Positions 8,726-63,752 of a DNA stretch of 64,000 bases are shown here, piece after piece; the stretch's first letter is position 1, and every line of letters starts with the position of its first letter. This DNA comes from Orbicella franksi (lineage: Eukaryota). The notes below the pieces were generated by a model. The model searched no databases. It saw nothing but the letters and a program-made list of their open reading frames with translations, and was not told the DNA's origin. Made by a program: the position numbers and the translations under genes. The stretch lies in NCBI GenBank assembly GCA_964199315.1, contig OZ116706.1, positions 27,280,001 through 27,344,000 on the forward strand, in the 5' to 3' direction.

Positions 8726-10110
8726 AGCAGATTGATGAATCTTGTGTGACAAGCCAACCAATAAAGTGTGGTAAACAAACAAGCCAACAAACAACAAACA
8801 TCAACATTAAAAGCTCCTTTAATGAGCAATATGATATGCATTCAAGTAAACAAGAACGACCAATCTACCATAAATACTATCATCAGTGCGGTCTAAACTC
8901 AGGCTACTCCTACACTGCCAGCAGTCGGATGCAATTAAGAGACAAGTGGCGTCATTATTTTAACAATTATTGTTAGATTAACAACGGATCAATGAAGCGA
9001 TCTATAAAGGCTCCAAAACCAAATCCAACAAGTAGCATTTTGCCTTCAGCATTAAGACCTTTTCCTAAACATACACTGAAGTTTTCAACTCTGCATTTCA
9101 CAAAAATGTTATCTTCCGTATGAAAATGTGCTCAATCTCTTACTTTCAAAAGCCATATCTTGATCAAGTCCTGCATGTAAAAGAACCAAACCTTTAAAAA
9201 CTTGATTGCTGGATAAACTTGATTATCAAATTCAATGCGAGTATTCACAAATCACTTCTGTAAAAGAAGTTTGTCTACGGAAGCTTCTGACCACGTGCAA
9301 ACCGCGTGACAACCATATAAGACCCACGTGACTTTACCTTAAGACCCGCGTGACCTCTCTAAATTATCGTATGTACAAATCTACTGCAATAAATTACGCC
9401 CTACATGAACTCGCCTCTAACACAATACTACAAACCACAAGACGAACATGCACTGGTTTTGTAAGGTATACTATTTAATTCATAATTTCACACGTGTTTC
9501 TCTTTCACTCAGAAGGGAAGATTCCAAGTAGCCAACGGATTCTGAAATAGTCTGTTAACAGGCGCCTATTTTTTCTTGCGAGTTACTTTCTTTTTTGAGC
9601 GCGAACGCGCGAGAACGGCCGCGAAGAGGGCGCAAATTTTGTCATTCCCCTGGGCCACCCCCTTGAATTCGGGCTTTTTTTAAAAATTACCTGCGGCTAA
9701 TACTTCTGCTAAATGCGATCTTCACGAACTCAAGACAAAATAGAGTGTCTGGGACAGACTAAATGTGAAATAGAGACGGTAAATTAGAATAAATACTTCA
9801 CGTCCGATCAGAATTTTTTTACGGCACTGAATATCGGTTAGATCCGGGAAGAGATTCTCCTTTGGAAACCGTGTGAAATTACGACTGCCGGCTATTACTA
9901 TACTCTGAAGCATTTCTTGAAAGCTATTAACTCGAAAACAGGTCAACGAACGAAATTTCTCCAATGTGGAAGCCAATTAACAATATATGCTTGAATAGTG
10001 GACGGAAAACAGACAGGCAAATAAATTAAATCTATATTTTGACTATGTCGATTTTTACTCAGTACTTTATGCCAAGCTCTCTTAACAGAAGACGACTGCA
10101 TCCGTGAGAA

Positions 10111-16100: not shown

Positions 16101-19100
16101 TCGATAACTTTCTGGTACATCAAAAGAAAGGCCTCCTTGATCAATTTCTTAATTCGTTTTACCTGTCCGCACCTGACAGCCAATTGCTAGTAGGAAGAAA
16201 TACAATGTGGATCACTCTGGAGTTCACCTACCTTCTTGAAGTAGTCACCAATCTCAAACTCGCTCTTCTGGGTGGCGATGTTGGATTTGACTTCAGCGTA
16301 CGTGTCGTTAATGATGGCCAAGAACATATTAAGCAGGACAAAGAACACGAAGAAGACATAGGTGATGAAGAAGATTGGACCAAGGACACGGTTGGCAGCC
16401 TCCAGAGCATGGAAGTCGAAATCACCCAGGATAATACGGAAAAGTGTAAAGCTACAAGGAAAAATTAAAAAAAAAAAAGTGCACATGAATTCCAAGATCA
16501 GATCGAAACGCCAAAAAATCGAAAGAAATGAATTAGACTTGAATGCAAGGCGTTTATGCCTGCGATGTGCAATGCTTTGCGTGGTTCAGTAAACACGCGC
16601 GCGTGGTCTACACGCGTGAGGTCTATAAGTACGCGCGTGGAATCAGTGAGATCCGCGCGACGAGAGCGAGTCATGAACCTATAACACAGTGAGAATTACC
16701 AAAGCCGTCCAGAGCCTAGTTGGCTATTCTTTGCAAGGTTTCTCACAAGTATTACACTCGTACAGGTTTTTAGTGTTCAGATTTGAGCGCGCCTGTACGT
16801 GCGTGGAAATCGAGTTCTGCTTGCACTCGCGTGAACGGCCACGCCCGTATTTGAGGGGATGTTAGTAGAACCCTTCACATCCAAGTCTGATACTTACATG
16901 GCGTCCTCGAACGTGCTGAAGTCGCGCACCTGAGTGCCAAACACAAGGTAACCCAGCTGCGCGTACGCGAGAAAGATGATGAAGAACATGACTGCAAAAC
17001 CACCAACGTCTTTGGCACACTACGAAAGAGAAAGAAAACAAACTTTTAGGGTATTGAGCCGAAAAAAATATGAGAGGAGATAATGTGTTGTTTTAGAATT
17101 GGTACTTCTTAGGAGTGAAAAAAATTTCAAGCCACGCCCACAAAAAACAGGATCTTGGTACCTCTTAGGGATTCTTTTCAAAATTTCTGACGAGCACCCC
17201 CGGTCCTTTTTATATGGGAGTCCCCCCCCCCCCCCACGGGGCTCGCAGTCTCAAAACAGTCTGTCTGCCTGTGTTCACTCAAGGGGGAATTTTCTTCAGT
17301 AAGGCTAGCCCTAAATCATATGGACAACGTTCATTTAAAGTTGTCTTAATATGCGACTGTTAACTACATGAAAGTCCAAAGTTAATCAATACCTTGGATG
17401 TTCAATTTACCAAATGATAATAATAATTTAATGATAATTATTTTTTTAAAAAAGAAAAAATGTTACTCTACATTGTTGAGAGTGGCTGACAACTGGGTCA
17501 TGGTCTTGTTGAAGCTGATGTACTTGAACACCTATGGAGAAGATAAACAGCTACATTAAATAGAGTTAAACCCATAACATGGCAACGACAGCAAAGCGAT
17601 AAACTTTCCATAAGATCGATTTCTGTATCCCGACCAAGAAAAAACCAATCAAGACGCTCGAATTTACCCCGAGACCACCTTGCCACATAATAATGAAAGA
17701 TGCTTTTTTTCTCAAAATCATCCCCCCTCAAAAGTCGAATGGTCCAACCCTAACAAGAGGCTATGTAGTCGGCTACAAGCGCGGAAAATTTACCTCACAA
17801 AAAGCGCGGGAACTTTACCTCACAACAAGCGCGGGAACTTTAACTCACAACAAGCGCGGGAAATTTACTCCACAAAAAGCGCGGGAAACTTCGGACACGT
17901 GAGCAAACTTACTTTTAGTTTGTCGCATCTGATTTAGATGGAAACAAAATTAATATATGTCTCTTCATTGTAGAAAAAGAAACAAATATTTTTACAACCA
18001 CTAGTAGAAACCACCTTATAGACAGAATAAACGTACGAGTTGTTGTTTTACCTTGATCCAGGCGAAAAATACGGCCACCGCCACCATGTTGTTGAACTGG
18101 GTCTGCCAGAATCCCAGAGAGTCGAAGTTTGCGTATTGCGTGTTGTCTGCCAAAAGCCCCTTGAGCAAGTGGTCCACCGCAAAGGTACGATAGAGGTTGA
18201 AGGCTATCGCCACATAGCCCAGGAAAATGACAATAATGTCGAGAACATTCCAGAAACTCTTGAAGTACTTCAGCTTGTGTTTCTTAATCTCCAGGATCTC
18301 TTCGATGGTGTAGTAGATAATGAAAAGGATGAAGATGCCCTCGCAGGCCATGACGAAGTGGTCGAAGGCGGTGACGTAACGAATCAGCTTGACCGTGCGG
18401 AAGGTGAAGGACGGAATACAGCCGCCTGTAGCTGGGTATTCAAACACCAGTCTGGAAAAACACAACAGGAACAAATATTAGACTTGGATTGAGCACATTT
18501 AATTGTGATTTACTTTAGTTAACTTCCAAGAGTCGGCTGTCAGTCTTGTTAAGTGGTAACTAAAGGAGAAAACAGTACGTTTTCAGCAGTACAGTACAAG
18601 AGCATGTTCAGGCAAGATGTGGCTTCCATTGCACAGTTTACTGGCCACTCTGGTTCACTTTGGCCAGCTTTACTGAATCATCTCCCTCCGTATTCTGGTC
18701 CATGGTCAACTTCACAAATTCTTATCTGAGTCATTGGAATCCTTCCCCCTGAGTTAAAGCTGCAAAGGGGACCTCCATCCTATGAACTTCCCCCATTTTA
18801 TTCAGTGTGGCGATGTCTAAAGAGGAGGCAGTGTGACCAAGTGGTTAGGGTGCCAGACTTGAAATCCGGAGGGCGCAGGTTCAAGTCCTGCTCTGACCAC
18901 TAAGCTGGAGTTGTTTATCGGTAGACCCTAGTTCAACTCCTCAGTCATGCTTGTAAATAGCCAACTGGTCTGTCTCCTGCCAGTTGGGATTTTTAAGTCT
19001 ATTATGTTTAGTTGATATAAACCACAAGAATCTAGACTTGAAACACACATGCCAAGATCTGACTTACCTGATTATACAGAACAAGTTGATGTTGGCATTG

Positions 19101-58004: not shown

Positions 58005-59112
58005 ATGGTAAGTATTTTGTTATCGTCTCGGAAAGTTTTGTGCTTCATCCACGAGCTGCATGTATCGGGAAAAGATTCCTGAAGGGGTAGAATTACTTTT
58101 AACTGAGGTTTTCTACGAGGAACTATCAGCTAGTAACAGGATATATGTAAAGAATTTTACTAAAGTAAACTCGATGGTATGAGTCTTGATAACGAAACTT
58201 GTCGGCACCGACCTTGTTTTACTTGTGTCAGTGTTTGGATTGGTCGTTATGGTAATGTGCTGGTGTCAACCACACGAAATGATAAACATGAGCGTATTCA
58301 CATGGTTACCATTTAGTTGCTCAAAGAGTGAAGAGTTTTAATATACTAAAAAAATACAGGTGCTTGGGTGCAAAATCTACAGGTTTTTTTTCTATTCATT
58401 AGGGAAACCCAATTATATATTTGTGTTTACTTTTAAGTCTATCCAAGTGTGTCATCGGGAAAAAAAGTGTTTTATAATCTTTCCAGGTAAATATGATGCA
58501 TAGTCAGGAACGAGAACTAAAGAAAGCGATCAAGCTTCCAACTTTAATGCCATGGAATTCTAATGTGATGATACAAAGGATGGTTTTGATGCGGTCGAGA
58601 TGCGGGAAGGATTTCAAACTACAAGCAAAGCGGACGCCTTACCAAATATATCCTCAAGCGACAGGCCCATTGTTAAGAGAGTTGCATTCGAAGATGCTAT
58701 ACAATCGGTAATGGAGGCAAACGGACACAAAGAAGAAAAAGAAGCAGATTTAAGGTTACCAGATATCCACGATTCGGCGTCAAGTATGTCTTCGGAAGAT
58801 AGACGATTTGAAGAGAATTCTCGCAGAAACGACTTTTCTGGTTTGGACAACGAGCGAGGAACAGAAAACCACTTTTCTAAAAAAGTTGACGTTAAGGAGA
58901 ACACCGAAAACTCATTGATGAAAAACTACGAATTCCAACGTGATCTACGATTTACACAATGCTCGAAAAAACTATCGCGAGAGAGATATTCCTACTTCCC
59001 GCGTTTTCCTTCTCCAAAGACCATGAACAACAGAGAGAGAGAGACTGAAAAAAGAATTAGAGAAGAAAACATTGAAGAAACAAGAGGAAACTATTCACCC
59101 GGGAAGCCTTAG
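58005..59112 (+). CDS. Uncharacterised disordered protein with an RVxF motif; ATG-only first coding exon(s) spliced to an exon at 58487 that carries an apparent -1 frameshift
   Basis: ATG|GT at 58005-58009 and 58174-58178. Acceptor TTTCCAG|GTA at 58487 continues in frame as MVNMMHSQERELKK. The long frame is open 58564-59112 (170 aa from ATG 58600) and contains KRVAF, LRLPDI and YSYFP. Confidence 0.6.
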
Positions 59113-59248
59113 AACGAAGGAAGAATACTTTTTCTTTCCCCGAAGAAAGTTTAAAAGCAGTTTGTGAAGAAACATGAGCTGTCTTGCCGCCCTATGGATT
59201 CACCGTTTTCTTTTTTTTTTTGGATTGATTTAGCATATCTGAGGTATA

Positions 59249-59547
59249 TGGTAAAATCTGCATATACGAGCGAGTGGCCCATCAGGCCGGCGCTTACCTC
59301 CGGTTTCTGTAGCATGAAACGACTAGGAGTACTTCTACTCCCCCCTGGATGGGATGCTAGTCCATCTCTGGGTTACCCCCAGTATTAAATTCGCCGGTAC
59401 CCACTTATACACCTGGGTGGAGAGAGGCACTGTGAGAGTGAGGTGTCTTCCCCAAGAACACAACATAATGTCCCCTGCCAGGGCTTGAACCCGGACCGCT
59501 CGATCCGGAGTCGAGCGCACTAACCATGAAGCCACCGCGCCTCCTAC
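59249..59547 (-). mobile_element. Full-length young tRNA-derived SINE
   Basis: A and B boxes and CpGs intact; 12-bp TSD ATCTGAGGTATA at 59237-59248 and 59548-59559. Confidence 0.9.
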
Positions 59548-59868
59548 ATCTGAGGTATAAAGCGTGACTTAAATCAGATGGACCAGGAAACCAAACCCAT
59601 TTCTAACAAATTGCGTGACTGTGTGCAGTGAGATTGCTAAGAAATAGAATTGTAAAAGCCCACCTCAGCGGCATGCATGTCCTCCAAGAAAGAATTAAAT
59701 CGTTACATGCTACAGCGTCAGAGTCTTTGAGATATTCCTGATGTCAATAATAATGTTAAATAATGTTAGATCAAGGTTTTGGAGTTGCTTGGATATCGGC
59801 GTTTCTTTGAGGTCTCTTATTACCCGACCCAGATCTCCTCCGTCCGTTACTAGTGAGATCGAAGATTA

Positions 59869-59882
59869 GTTTCCATGGCAAC
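59869..59882. promoter_or_regulatory. RFX X-box
   Basis: GTTTCCATGGCAAC fits GTHNYYATRRNAAC fully. Confidence 0.45.
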
Positions 59883-60086
59883 TACTGCAAAGTATCGAAG
59901 TTATAACAAATGTGAAATAAATTTGTAAATAAATAAATGAATAAATAAATAAATTTAACTAGCAGTTAGCGATTAACAACGTTATTGATAGCTCGCAATA
60001 GTTCCGCTGACAAAAATTCTTCAATTAACACAAATCAATACATCAGTCTACTTCAAAAGCAAATGGTGGTGTTCAAATTCAATGCA

Positions 60087-60842
60087 TCAGTCTTTGTACT
60101 TCAAAAGCGAATGGCGGTGTTTAAATTCTCTCAGTTTTCTTCCAATTTCCGCTTCGTGGCGAGTCATTCTCTCTCGCATTTTATCTTCTGCCCAATGCGG
60201 TGGCATAGAATCGGAGCTCTGATCCACAGACTTCTTCTGAAGACAAGGAAAATAGGAGAACCCTTGACACGAAGTTCGTTCAAACCTGCCTTCGAAATAA
60301 GAATGTTTTGGCTCTATCGAATGCCCCCATTCCGAAGAGATCATCCTGTTTTCTCTGATCCGCTGTATTTTAGCCTCTTCTCTCATTTGTCTGTCGATTT
60401 TGAGTATCTCGTCGGTCAGTTTGTTCAAAAGACCTCGAGGAATTTCGTAAGTATCGCGTAAACCCAACGCAGCACTCCAGCTTTCTGTGGGCTTACTTGT
60501 AACACCTTCCGATGTTGACGTTAAAGCGAGCGAAGGCAAACGTAAATTGCCTCGTCGTTTTTCGAGCTTGGTTGGTTTAGTAGCTTCTTTTTGTCGTGTT
60601 TTTAACATTTCTTGCGTTTGAAAAGTCACCTTCGGTGATGAAGACTTCCCAGCGACTGTTTTCGACGAGTTTTTCGTCGCGAGTTCAGGAAAGTGAACTA
60701 TAACATCTTTTTGTTTCTTCTGACGCAAATATTTTTTCTTTGTGCCACTTTTTGCTTTGTGTTTACGCTTTGAGCTATTGTCGTCAGCTATCGAGGGCAG
60801 GAAAGATTGCTCCTGATTGTCAGAACTTGAATACAAAACCAT
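60087..60842 (-). CDS. Uncharacterised disordered basic protein, about 251 aa from ATG 60842
   Basis: ORF open from 61064 to TGA 60087; strong acceptor at 61003 (CTTTCTCGCTTTAATGTAG); first in-frame ATG at 60842; candidate non-coding leader exon 62441-62549 with canonical sites. An N-terminal extension from an unseen exon is possible. Confidence 0.7.
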   Translation of the reverse strand: MVLYSSSDNQEQSFLPSIADDNSSKRKHKAKSGTKKKYLRQKKQKDVIVHFPELATKNSSKTVAGKSSSPKVTFQTQEMLKTRQKEATKPTKLEKRRGNLRLPSLALTSTSEGVTSKPTESWSAALGLRDTYEIPRGLLNKLTDEILKIDRQMREEAKIQRIRENRMISSEWGHSIEPKHSYFEGRFERTSCQGFSYFPCLQKKSVDQSSDSMPPHWAEDKMRERMTRHEAEIGRKLREFKHRHSLLKYKD

Positions 60843-62767
60843 CCTCCGAGATAAAGAATATCCGGTGAACGTCAGCGAACTACATGAAGTGTCTGTGGAG
60901 AAAGACTGAGTATGTGATAGAAGCTGTGCCTTCGCGGCCCTGCTTTCATAAAACGCCTTTTGCGTGAAAAACGTACGAATATTCAGTACCTCAGTGGGTG
61001 ATGCTACATTAAAGCGAGAAAGTTTACTCCGTTGTTGTAGAAATGGTGTCAAGTTTGCATTCAATGTTTACTGTTATGGTTAAAAAATGTGTAACTTGAT
61101 AAGATCCACAACAATAACTGAATTAACTTGACAGTTATCCCCTACTGATCCACCTGCCATCTCCTAGCTATGTATTATATATTTTCAAGTGTCTAGATTT
61201 TTCTATACTTAGGCCAACTTCATCAACAAGATCTTCTCGCAGTCAAACATCAAGGTGAAAACTTTCCGTGCCAAAGCAAACAGATTTTATTGTTGTAGAC
61301 ATATGTCTGATCATCGGGCGAAAAAATCGCCACTTTTGTACAACAAGTTTCGTCCCTCGAGGTATAATGAGTGTGAATTCTCCCACTAGACGTAAATATT
61401 TAAAGGACGGGTCAATATATTTCCATGAAAACTTTATTAAAGCTTTCACGGGTTAATAACGAAACTAGCCAGTTGGAATCGTTGTTTATGCAATCTGTCA
61501 GACAGTTGTCTAGTAGTAATAGGCAAAACTTGAACCCAATAACTTTAAATTCTGTAGAAACTGGCCTACATTATTCATTTGGCATGTGTTAAACTAAATG
61601 GAAGGGTTTTCCTTAACTATTTTTTTTATTAATATAATAGGTTTCGGCGAGTTATTTTTTTCAAGCGAAGCAGTCCAATGTCTGGATATTACAAACATTA
61701 GAACCCTTCTCTAATGCCATGATTTTCAGTGCAATAAATTAGAAATAACGTTTATTTATTTATTTTTTCCGCAAAACAAACATCACATCATCACGAATCT
61801 GCTTCGCGGAAGCAACAGCTCTTTTCTGCGTGCAAAACAAATATTTTCGTGCCATATTTTCTTGTAGAATTCTGATGATTACAAATTACACATTTTCAAT
61901 GGGAAGCCATGCATCCATTGTGCAAACAGTTGTGTTATTTCAATAAAGAACATTTCCAATTGGTTATGGTAGACAATACCAACGGCTTGAGAGCCTCGAT
62001 CGAGTCGCGGGCATTTGTAAACAGCTTGCTCGATATTTATAAAGATTGATTTTCAAAATATATTTCCTTATGGTATCTCTTAAGTTTGTTCAACTTGATA
62101 TGATGTAAAATGCTGACAGAAGTTTGCTGTAAATTCAGCTAAAACCAAATTCATGTTAACAAGAAGTGAATTGTGTAATAGTAGGTTGGAAATTTTCTCT
62201 AACATGCCGGTGAATTTGAAGAACCCCAACGGGAAAATTTCCTTTATGAAACTCTAAAACAGTTCGGCAAAAGGAACTTTCTCAGTATTATATAAATATT
62301 TGTGTTTTTGGCTTGTTAACGATTATGTTTTCGTAACAACCCGCCCTGACGCTAAAACGCCTACAAAATGGTACTACAATAGAAATAAACAAATAAATGA
62401 AATAAAATGTTCGTCGTATCATGCACAAAAAACGTCTTACCTTGAATATTTGCCAATTCGAAATCAGAGGTATGTTCGAGCGTTAAAACGAAGAAGCCTC
62501 TTACAACTTATTTTCTGGTCTTGTAAATGCTCGAATTTGTTACACCGTCCTGAAAATAAATAATTGATGACTGTGCTAAGCAGTTGTCACGAATATGCCC
62601 TCCTCTCCGTCTTCCGTTATGTTTCCTGTTTCGGCCAGAAATCCACCTGTTCTCTGTTATGTTATTGTTTTTTAGAGATTGTTATTAGCAGGTAGTTAAA
62701 CGATCTTGACTTGAGTTGTTAATAGCTTTGCTTCTTAAACAGGCGTTTTAAACAAGTGCTGTCTTAA

Positions 62768-63738: not shown

Positions 63739-63752
63739 GTTACCATGGCTAC
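63739..63752. promoter_or_regulatory. X-box-like site in a probable promoter
   Basis: GTTACCATGGCTAC (one mismatch), with a second half-site GTTGCC at about 63768, in CpG-rich DNA upstream of the minus-strand 251-aa gene. Confidence 0.4.

Follow-up and report, generated by a model that had tools for sequence, protein, structure and literature searches.

The window analysed here, a 64,000-nucleotide (nt) stretch of the genome of the stony coral Orbicella franksi, contains two convergent (tail-to-tail) genes at 58487-60842, which are called A (plus strand) and B (minus strand). Our reading of the locus, to which we give a probability of about 0.6, is that these are two transcribed genes of two protein families, most likely very old tail-to-tail paralogues, of which B is intact and A is decaying. 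The initial annotation had reported seven short motifs shared by both genes in the same order and had interpreted them as marks of a new family of disordered proteins docking to protein phosphatase 1 (PP1), with a possible role in cilia or sperm. The observation was confirmed in part, and its interpretation was supported in part. The pair is ordinary, previously undescribed, and lineage-restricted, with no demonstrated PP1 or cilia system.

Two gene families in conserved order

The loci compared with the window were those of Oculina patagonica (L006), Nematostella (L008), two close relatives of the window (L012 and L013), another coral (L007), an anthozoan (L009), and two further anthozoan loci (L010 and L011). 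Read evidence was taken from one DNA run (X1), two RNA runs bearing two species labels (X15 and X16), and a stranded poly(A) run (X24); the RNA runs came from holobiont or unspecified samples. Each gene carries its whole coding sequence in one exon and is transcribed, and a genome search found both to be single-copy in the window genome, with no further paralogues.

For B, 31 homologues were retrieved at E below 1e-42, all unnamed except one O. patagonica 'uncharacterized protein', and for A, 14-25 homologues were retrieved, one of them an uncharacterised Oculina protein. A profile of the B alignment, searched against 1.84 billion representative proteins, yielded only 15 matches, among them LOC125573264 of Nematostella vectensis. 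LOC144654673 and LOC144655265 of Oculina are the orthologues of B and A, respectively, and LOC125573264 is the B orthologue of N. vectensis; NCBI labels all three 'uncharacterized protein' with no family or domain attached, and a literature search on the Nematostella gene identifier found no paper. No Pfam family was found for either window protein, for any of 10 A and 26 B members, for the neighbour gene described below, or for the Nematostella pair, and PDB sequence searches with both family profiles returned no matches at E up to 10. A Foldseek search of the B model against AlphaFold Swiss-Prot gave a template modelling (TM) score of at most 0.19, which is meaningless, and the best ESM Atlas scores (0.77-0.80) were under the lead threshold, with none for the helical half of B. 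The description of the two genes as unassigned was correct, both being real and transcribed and their families having no Pfam, PDB, or fold match. Judged by these searches, A and B represent two uncharacterised families, so far known from stony corals and sea anemones (Hexacorallia) alone.

The order of a gene of about 700 amino acids (aa), A, and B, with A and B convergent, was found in Oculina, L007, L012, L013, Nematostella, L010, and L011. In Nematostella, the open reading frame (ORF) at L008:11291-11962 (minus strand), adjoining LOC125573264, has ...SRVNYTYFHRFPSPPPLNKRERL... and, at the C-terminus, ...EFAKRHRL; it is a clear A orthologue. As the same three-gene arrangement is present in corals and Nematostella, the tail-to-tail pair is older than the coral-anemone split. 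At L009 (8700-11500), B (P0062) is accompanied by the large neighbour, and no trace of A was found.

Two further observations were made at these loci. The L009 B protein is without the usual C-terminal F..[KR]H ending, and L010 has a tandem-repeat ORF with the unit ENYNPASGSALQVVQYR between the A and B orthologues (9266-9685, minus strand).

Similarity between A and B

The most conserved segment of both families is the SYFP block (SRxx[FY]SYFP), in which seven of the nine positions match between them. When the hidden Markov model (HMM) of the B family was run on 20 A proteins with HMMER as a single targeted comparison, E-values from 1.4e-7 to 0.04 were obtained, and 13 of the 20 proteins exceeded the 99.9th percentile of a set of 3000 shuffled A sequences; the alignment covers the SYFP block with about 20 residues to either side. 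The A HMM placed five B proteins above all 3120 shuffles, over the N-terminal region that holds the LP motifs. In a six-frame scan of the locus, the best match of each family HMM outside its own gene was the other gene. The whole-profile collinear-chain score, calculated with broadened profiles, reached a z of 4.9-6.4 and was equalled by 0 of 1000 column shuffles, mostly due to the SYFP block. A naive joint MAFFT alignment of eight A and ten B proteins aligned the LRLP and SYFP blocks of the two families with each other, and likewise their C-terminal [EQ]-F-x-[KR]-[KR]-H, with invariant columns at the P of the LP motif, the Y and F of SYF, and the F of the C-terminal block.

The two families also have a common layout: basic proteins of 220-260 aa from a single coding exon, with a disordered N-terminal half that holds [LVF]-x-[LF]-P-x-[LIV] motifs, a helix, the invariant SYFP block, and another helix, at whose end stands F-x-[KR]-[KR]-H. 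In the AlphaFold model of B, residues 1-120 are disordered, and they are followed by a helix at 136-173 (predicted local distance difference test, pLDDT, above 90), the SYFP block at 195-199, and a helix at 216-244. In that of Oculina A, residues 1-130 are disordered, a helix spans 134-153, the SYFP block lies at 161-165, and further helices span 175-187 and 203-224. The characterisation of A and B as disordered proteins fits their N-terminal halves, which are predicted to be disordered. In addition, long helical blocks peculiar to each family are conserved, contrary to the suggestion that only short linear motifs had been kept. Among the family-specific blocks are HPGSLR..EEY in A and EIPR..L..EI.KI.RQ in B.

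The expectation that ordinary BLAST would miss the link proved right, as BLASTP on the two window proteins alone gave E-values of 0.15 (LRLP segment) and 1.8 (SYFP segment), which are not significant. The collinear-chain score for this pair had a z of about 2 (p about 0.03-0.06), and single-pair chain tests across seven species ranged from p < 0.002 to p about 0.6. The physical linkage is old, with A and B lying tail to tail at seven loci that range from stony corals to Nematostella. With this synteny, and with SYFP, LRLP, and F..[KR]H in the same order in both families, the proposed descent as ancient inverted paralogues is likely and is the most economical reading. On this evidence, A and B are probably ancient tail-to-tail paralogues that were duplicated before the coral-anemone split.

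Gene B is intact and expressed

The coding sequence of B (60087-60842, minus strand) is intact and encodes 251 aa plus the stop codon, with the ATG at 60842 and the stop at 60087-60089. It contains FLPSI, HFPEL, PKVTF, NLRLPSL, a first helix (60345-60479), SCQGFSYFPCL, and a second helix ending in REFKHRH. A GT..AG intron of 146 nt in the 5' untranslated region (UTR) occupies 60843-60988 (minus strand), with its acceptor directly before the start codon; a spliced RNA contig of X16 joins 60842 to 60989, and the upstream non-coding exon (60989-61100, minus strand) reaches at least 61100. As the read depth falls inside this intron, DNA contamination of the RNA libraries was considered low. In X24, the stranded poly(A) reads are confined to 59992-60837 and have their first mates on the plus strand, so that the RNA of B is of the minus strand. 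B is intact and expressed from the minus strand.

Gene A is split and truncated in the window

A is not a single ORF in the window. The ATG at 58493 opens a frame of 72 codons only, a dead end, of which the first 23 codons (58493-58562, plus strand), including KLPTL at 58532-58546, are in the ancestral frame. DNA alignment showed that a single A present in L013, L012, and Oculina is missing at 58562/58563 (TCTAATG in the window, TCTAAATG or TCTAAGAG in the relatives), and this 1-nt deletion splits the gene into two frames and cuts off the first 23 codons. The DNA run X1 has the window sequence over both A and B, and the RNA contigs of X15 and X16 are likewise without the extra A. An intron behind the frame change near 58562 was rejected, as the RNA contigs are continuous and the relatives differ by exactly one A. 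The main open frame (58564-59112, plus strand; longest ATG-initiated ORF 58600-59112, 170 aa) contains ALPNI, KRVAF (the RVxF site discussed below), LRLPDI, a predicted helix, and SRERYSYFPRF.

The tail of the main frame from 59044 onward is outside the ancestral frame. It follows an (AG)6 microsatellite (59032-59043, plus strand), at which the ancestral reading is REKLKKEMEE; as the run is 4 nt longer than in Oculina and shifts the frame, RERETEKRIRE is a frameshift product. A 2-nt shorter allele occurs in X15, X16, and L013, and in the RNA contigs it ends the ORF at ...NNRERD; P0032, the L013-encoded protein, has exactly this C-terminus. The tail is thus polymorphic and under no constraint.

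The ancestral C-terminal third (HPGSLRTKEEY...KQFVKKHKLSCRP.DSPFF) is intact in Oculina, L007, and the anemones, and the A proteins of Oculina and Nematostella keep the C-terminal helix that is lost in the window genome. In the window, the A-family HMM and DNA alignment identified a relic of this third at 59044-59232 (plus strand; HPGSLRTKEEY...KQFVKKHxLSCRPMDSPF), divided between two other frames, with 7 nt deleted after 59129 and a stop codon, TAA, at 59152-59154. The HMM matched its pieces at 59027-59164 (45.9 bits) and 59155-59385 (21.4 bits). In L012, the C-terminus has been lost too, via a different first frameshift and more indels, and in the close relative L013, the N-terminus is intact. 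These comparisons indicate that the C-terminal third was lost by frameshifts across the whole near clade and that A is degenerating in the lineage of the window.

RNA contigs in two runs span A from ~58375-58384 to a short interspersed element (SINE) at ~59327. They start at 58375 and 58384 (X15 and X16), where the word depth rises from ~2-4 to 9-36, and this places the approximate 5' end and 5' UTR at 58375-58492 (plus strand). No splice across 58487 was present in the RNA contigs, and a splice acceptor at that position was rejected. X24 contained no reads of A, where B has coverage. The ratio of nonsynonymous to synonymous substitution rates (dN/dS) of the retained A core was 0.5-0.7 within the near clade, compared with 0.51-0.55 for B in the same pairs; in deep comparisons, it was about 0.25-0.3 for either gene. 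As the dN/dS of the core is much like that of B, A can be described as truncated, frameshifted, and possibly dying, but not obviously neutral.

The SINE is a high-copy element with a tRNA-like head and lies between A and B, just past the A relic (59240-59560, minus strand). Its word depth reaches about 1.1 million in X1, and an Rfam tRNA match at 59477-59535 (minus strand) scored 27.8 bits, under the gathering score of 29.

Conservation of the shared motifs

All 14 strings of the seven proposed motif pairs are present in the stated order, but three of the seven pairs fail. In A (plus strand), KLPTL is followed by ALPNI at 58636-58650, KRVAF at 58675-58689, DLRLPDI at 58747-58767, ENSLM at 58906-58920, YSYFPRF within 58975-59007, and RERETEKRIRE at 59032-59064. 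In B (minus strand), the strings are FLPSI (60789-60803), HFPEL (60681-60695), PKVTF (60621-60635), NLRLPSL (60528-60548), ENRMI (60339-60353), FSYFPCL (within 60240-60272), and HEAEIGRKLRE (60126-60158). The plus-strand strings do not form one gene frame: the read-confirmed deletion leaves KLPTL in another reading frame than the other six. ENSLM/ENRMI is conserved in neither family, ENRMI being part of a B helix, and in RERETEKRIRE/HEAEIGRKLRE the A side is the frameshift artefact; the true counterpart of the B helix end is ...KQFVKKHKL.

When the motifs were checked in orthologues, the LRLP and SYFP pairs held up, and clear conservation across both families is limited to the SRxx[FY]SYFP and LRLP blocks. 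Weaker shared extras are an N-terminal LP motif and the F-x-[KR]-[KR]-H block at the C-terminus. Among corals, both families retain the first and the second LP motif (FP in the second of B), and their one-to-one pairing is ambiguous because all of them repeat a single motif, [LVF]-x-[LF]-P-x-[LIV]. To our knowledge, none of the B56 LxxIxE, DEF FxFP, SxIP, and MAPK D-site motifs fits the conserved LxLPxL/SYFP positions.

PP1 docking

A loose RVxF pattern, [RK]-x(0,1)-[VI]-{P}-[FW], is matched by KRVAF in A and KVTF in B, and both matches are collinear and lie in predicted disordered segments with pLDDT under 50. The reported fit to the RVxF consensus holds for both proteins in this loose form, but the strict form, [HKR][ACHKMNQRSTV]V[CHKNQRST][FW], occurs in coral A only. 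Of the 17 stony-coral A members, 14 have K-x-V-x-F between the second and third LP motifs, and 13 of these fit the strict form; the A site is present as RIVTF in L011, not at the same position in L010, and not in Nematostella A. In the B family, KVTF was found in only 5 of the 26 members, all close to the window, and the strict form in 0; the position reads KATL in Oculina and SSL, TSQ, and similar in other members. Neither Nematostella protein has RVxF at the expected position. In shuffled sequences of the same composition, the loose pattern arose by chance in about 25% and the strict pattern in about 2.5%.

From this distribution, coral A is a fair candidate PP1 binder, and B is not. As B is not a candidate, PP1 docking does not define a joint family, and the proposal that it is a property shared by both genes was not sustained; for B, the missing conservation contradicts it.

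X-boxes and a possible role in cilia or sperm

A perfect palindromic RFX X-box (GTTTCCATGGCAAC) was found at 59869-59882, between the 3' ends of the two genes and about 200 nt past the B stop. Oculina, L012, and L013 keep it at the orthologous position (synonymous divergence about 0.75), and L007 and the anemone loci have none there. In the window, the pattern GTHNYYATRRNAAC gave nine strand matches at six sites (15841, 28233, 39753, 52817, 59869, and 63739), compared with 0.48 expected by shuffling. A repeat family as the source of this enrichment was rejected, as the flanks of the sites are unrelated and the sites are therefore not repeat copies.

Typical functional X-boxes in C. elegans lie roughly 100-250 bp upstream of coding starts (PMC2873420). 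At the A/B locus, the perfect X-box at 59869-59882 is downstream and not 100-250 bp upstream, and upstream of A only a one-mismatch X-box-like site was found (58243-58256), of which just the first half is conserved. The X-box at 63739, about 2.9 kb upstream of the B start codon, could be near the B promoter. The initial annotation had also pointed to a nearby PKD2 gene. PKD-channel (PF08016) exons are located at 16289-18381 (minus strand), about 40 kb from A and B, and PKD-channel matches in the whole genome number 87 or more, many of which form tandem clusters on contigs C4, C5, and C6. The suggested role in cilia or sperm is a lead only and is unproven, and the one observation that points to it is the conserved X-box between the genes.

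Conserved non-coding blocks were also observed in five corals at 58243-58330, ~160-250 nt upstream of the A start codon. They contain the imperfect X-box-like GTCGTTATGGTAAT and CTTCACATGGTTACC, an E-box with an X-box half-site.

The large neighbouring gene

The upstream neighbour of A in corals is an intronless gene of about 650-820 aa on the strand opposite to A, and its synteny with the A/B pair extends from corals to Nematostella. In the window, it is an intronless ORF of 657 aa (53324-55297, minus strand), mostly of low complexity and with no Pfam match, and its counterparts lie at L008:16298-18463 and L007:1442-3568. Both ends of the protein, MSS.E.LLQ at the N-terminus and ...LERICDPNARVRHIF at the C-terminus, hardly vary, and the neighbour gene at the A/B locus ends in ...RICDPNARVRHIF. 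With it, the block has three uncharacterised conserved genes.

Proposed explanation and alternatives

A local inverted duplication before the divergence of corals and anemones may have produced A and B. The SYFP block and the LxLPxL motifs would serve as docking sites for a common conserved partner, and the two proteins would act as linear-motif adaptors, with the helices as a second interface. RFX may regulate the locus, as hinted by the conserved X-box between the genes, and only coral A carries a conserved RVxF that could recruit PP1.

Several results weigh against this explanation. In hhalign, the family profiles aligned only over the SRxx[FY]SYFP block, with E-values of 0.0025-0.0031 and a probability of 10-12%. 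The HMM comparison that had been suggested as a check was thus divided, the cross-HMM and chain scores being far above shuffles but hhalign finding one block at low probability. When the SYFP block was removed, the N-terminal part gave p 0.01-0.1, about equal to the reversed control, and the C-terminal part a marginal p of 0.03-0.09. HMMER paired the LP motifs one register off from the pairing of the initial annotation, and the shared short motifs could come from convergence on a common partner. The conserved X-box lies downstream of both stop codons and is not in a promoter. A complex prediction for the helical halves of B and A returned a score of 0.00, meaning 'no answer', and is evidence neither way.

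Were A and B unrelated neighbours, their motifs would reflect chance and composition or a convergent docking motif, and their adjacency shared regulation only. The insignificant BLASTP result on the pair, the hhalign probability of 10-12%, the spread of the single-pair chain tests over seven species (p < 0.002 to about 0.6), the marginal similarity outside the SYFP block, and the failure of three of the seven motif pairs would all follow. We nevertheless consider this, the main rival to paralogy, unlikely, as the SYFP block matches at 7 of 9 positions, far above shuffles; LRLP, SYFP, and F..[KR]H keep the same order within the same disorder-helix-motif-helix layout; and the genes share their structure and a similar length and have been tail-to-tail since before the coral-anemone split. 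The initial proposal of one new family of disordered proteins that dock to PP1 through a shared RVxF and act in cilia or sperm phospho-signalling seems quite improbable. It can draw on the loose, collinear RVxF in disordered segments of both window proteins, on the A site in 14 of 17 stony-coral members (13 strict, a form found in only about 2.5% of shuffles), and on the conserved X-box between A and B. However, the B site is found in 5 of 26 members, all near the window and never strict, neither Nematostella protein has RVxF at the position, and about a quarter of sequences match the loose pattern by chance. Still further from what we would expect is that the pair founds a new hexacorallian, RFX-controlled family of cilia or the sperm flagellum, with SYFP and LxLPxL as a new docking code and A also recruiting PP1 via RVxF.

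A further reading, to which we give somewhat less than an even chance, is that A is here a transcribed pseudogene and only B is functional. The 1-nt deletion after codon 23, confirmed in DNA and in RNA contigs, the loss of the C-terminal third with several indels and an in-frame TAA, the polymorphic (AG)n run that alters the tail between individuals, the lack of A reads in X24 while B is covered, and the absence of A at L009 are all as expected of a pseudogene. On the other hand, the 170-aa ORF with the second LP motif, RVxF, the third LP motif, and the SYFP block is still open, its core dN/dS in the near clade (0.5-0.7) is close to that of B (0.51-0.55), RNA contigs in two runs still cover A, and the close relative L013 has an intact N-terminus.

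If the paralogy and the shared SYFP/LxLP motifs hold, the pair would be a clean case of duplicates that kept a short-motif skeleton, with linkers diverged past the reach of BLAST, and would offer a lead to a motif-binding partner in cnidarians. Two unnamed families gain a definition, an architecture, and a syntenic anchor for the annotation of corals and anemones, and the plus-strand copy in the window genome should be annotated as frameshifted and truncated.

Comparison with known systems

The systems closest in kind are the PP1 interactors and certain microtubule inner proteins of cilia and sperm. PP1-interacting proteins with an RVxF docking motif include inhibitor-2, PNUTS, RepoMan, and spinophilin. 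Like these, A and B have disordered N-terminal regions with short linear motifs, and coral A has, by its sequence pattern, a conserved K-x-V-x-F in a disordered, acidic-flanked context. The differences are that B and anemone A do not conserve the site and that neither family shows a SILK or a conserved hydrophobic-pair accessory motif; A and B also have no sequence relationship to known PP1 regulators, matching nothing in Pfam or the PDB.

CIMIP4/TEX33 (PF15400) exemplify small, lineage-restricted microtubule inner proteins of cilia and sperm. A language-model search connected A with a CIMIP4 cluster at a score of 0.77, which is below the lead threshold of the tool, and PF15400 matched none of the 10 A and 26 B members searched, even with E-values of up to 10 allowed. 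Unlike CIMIP4/TEX33, A and B have no axonemal PDB match, and their X-box is not placed in a promoter. They resemble these proteins in being small, basic, and mostly disordered, with few helices, short invariant motifs, and an X-box nearby.

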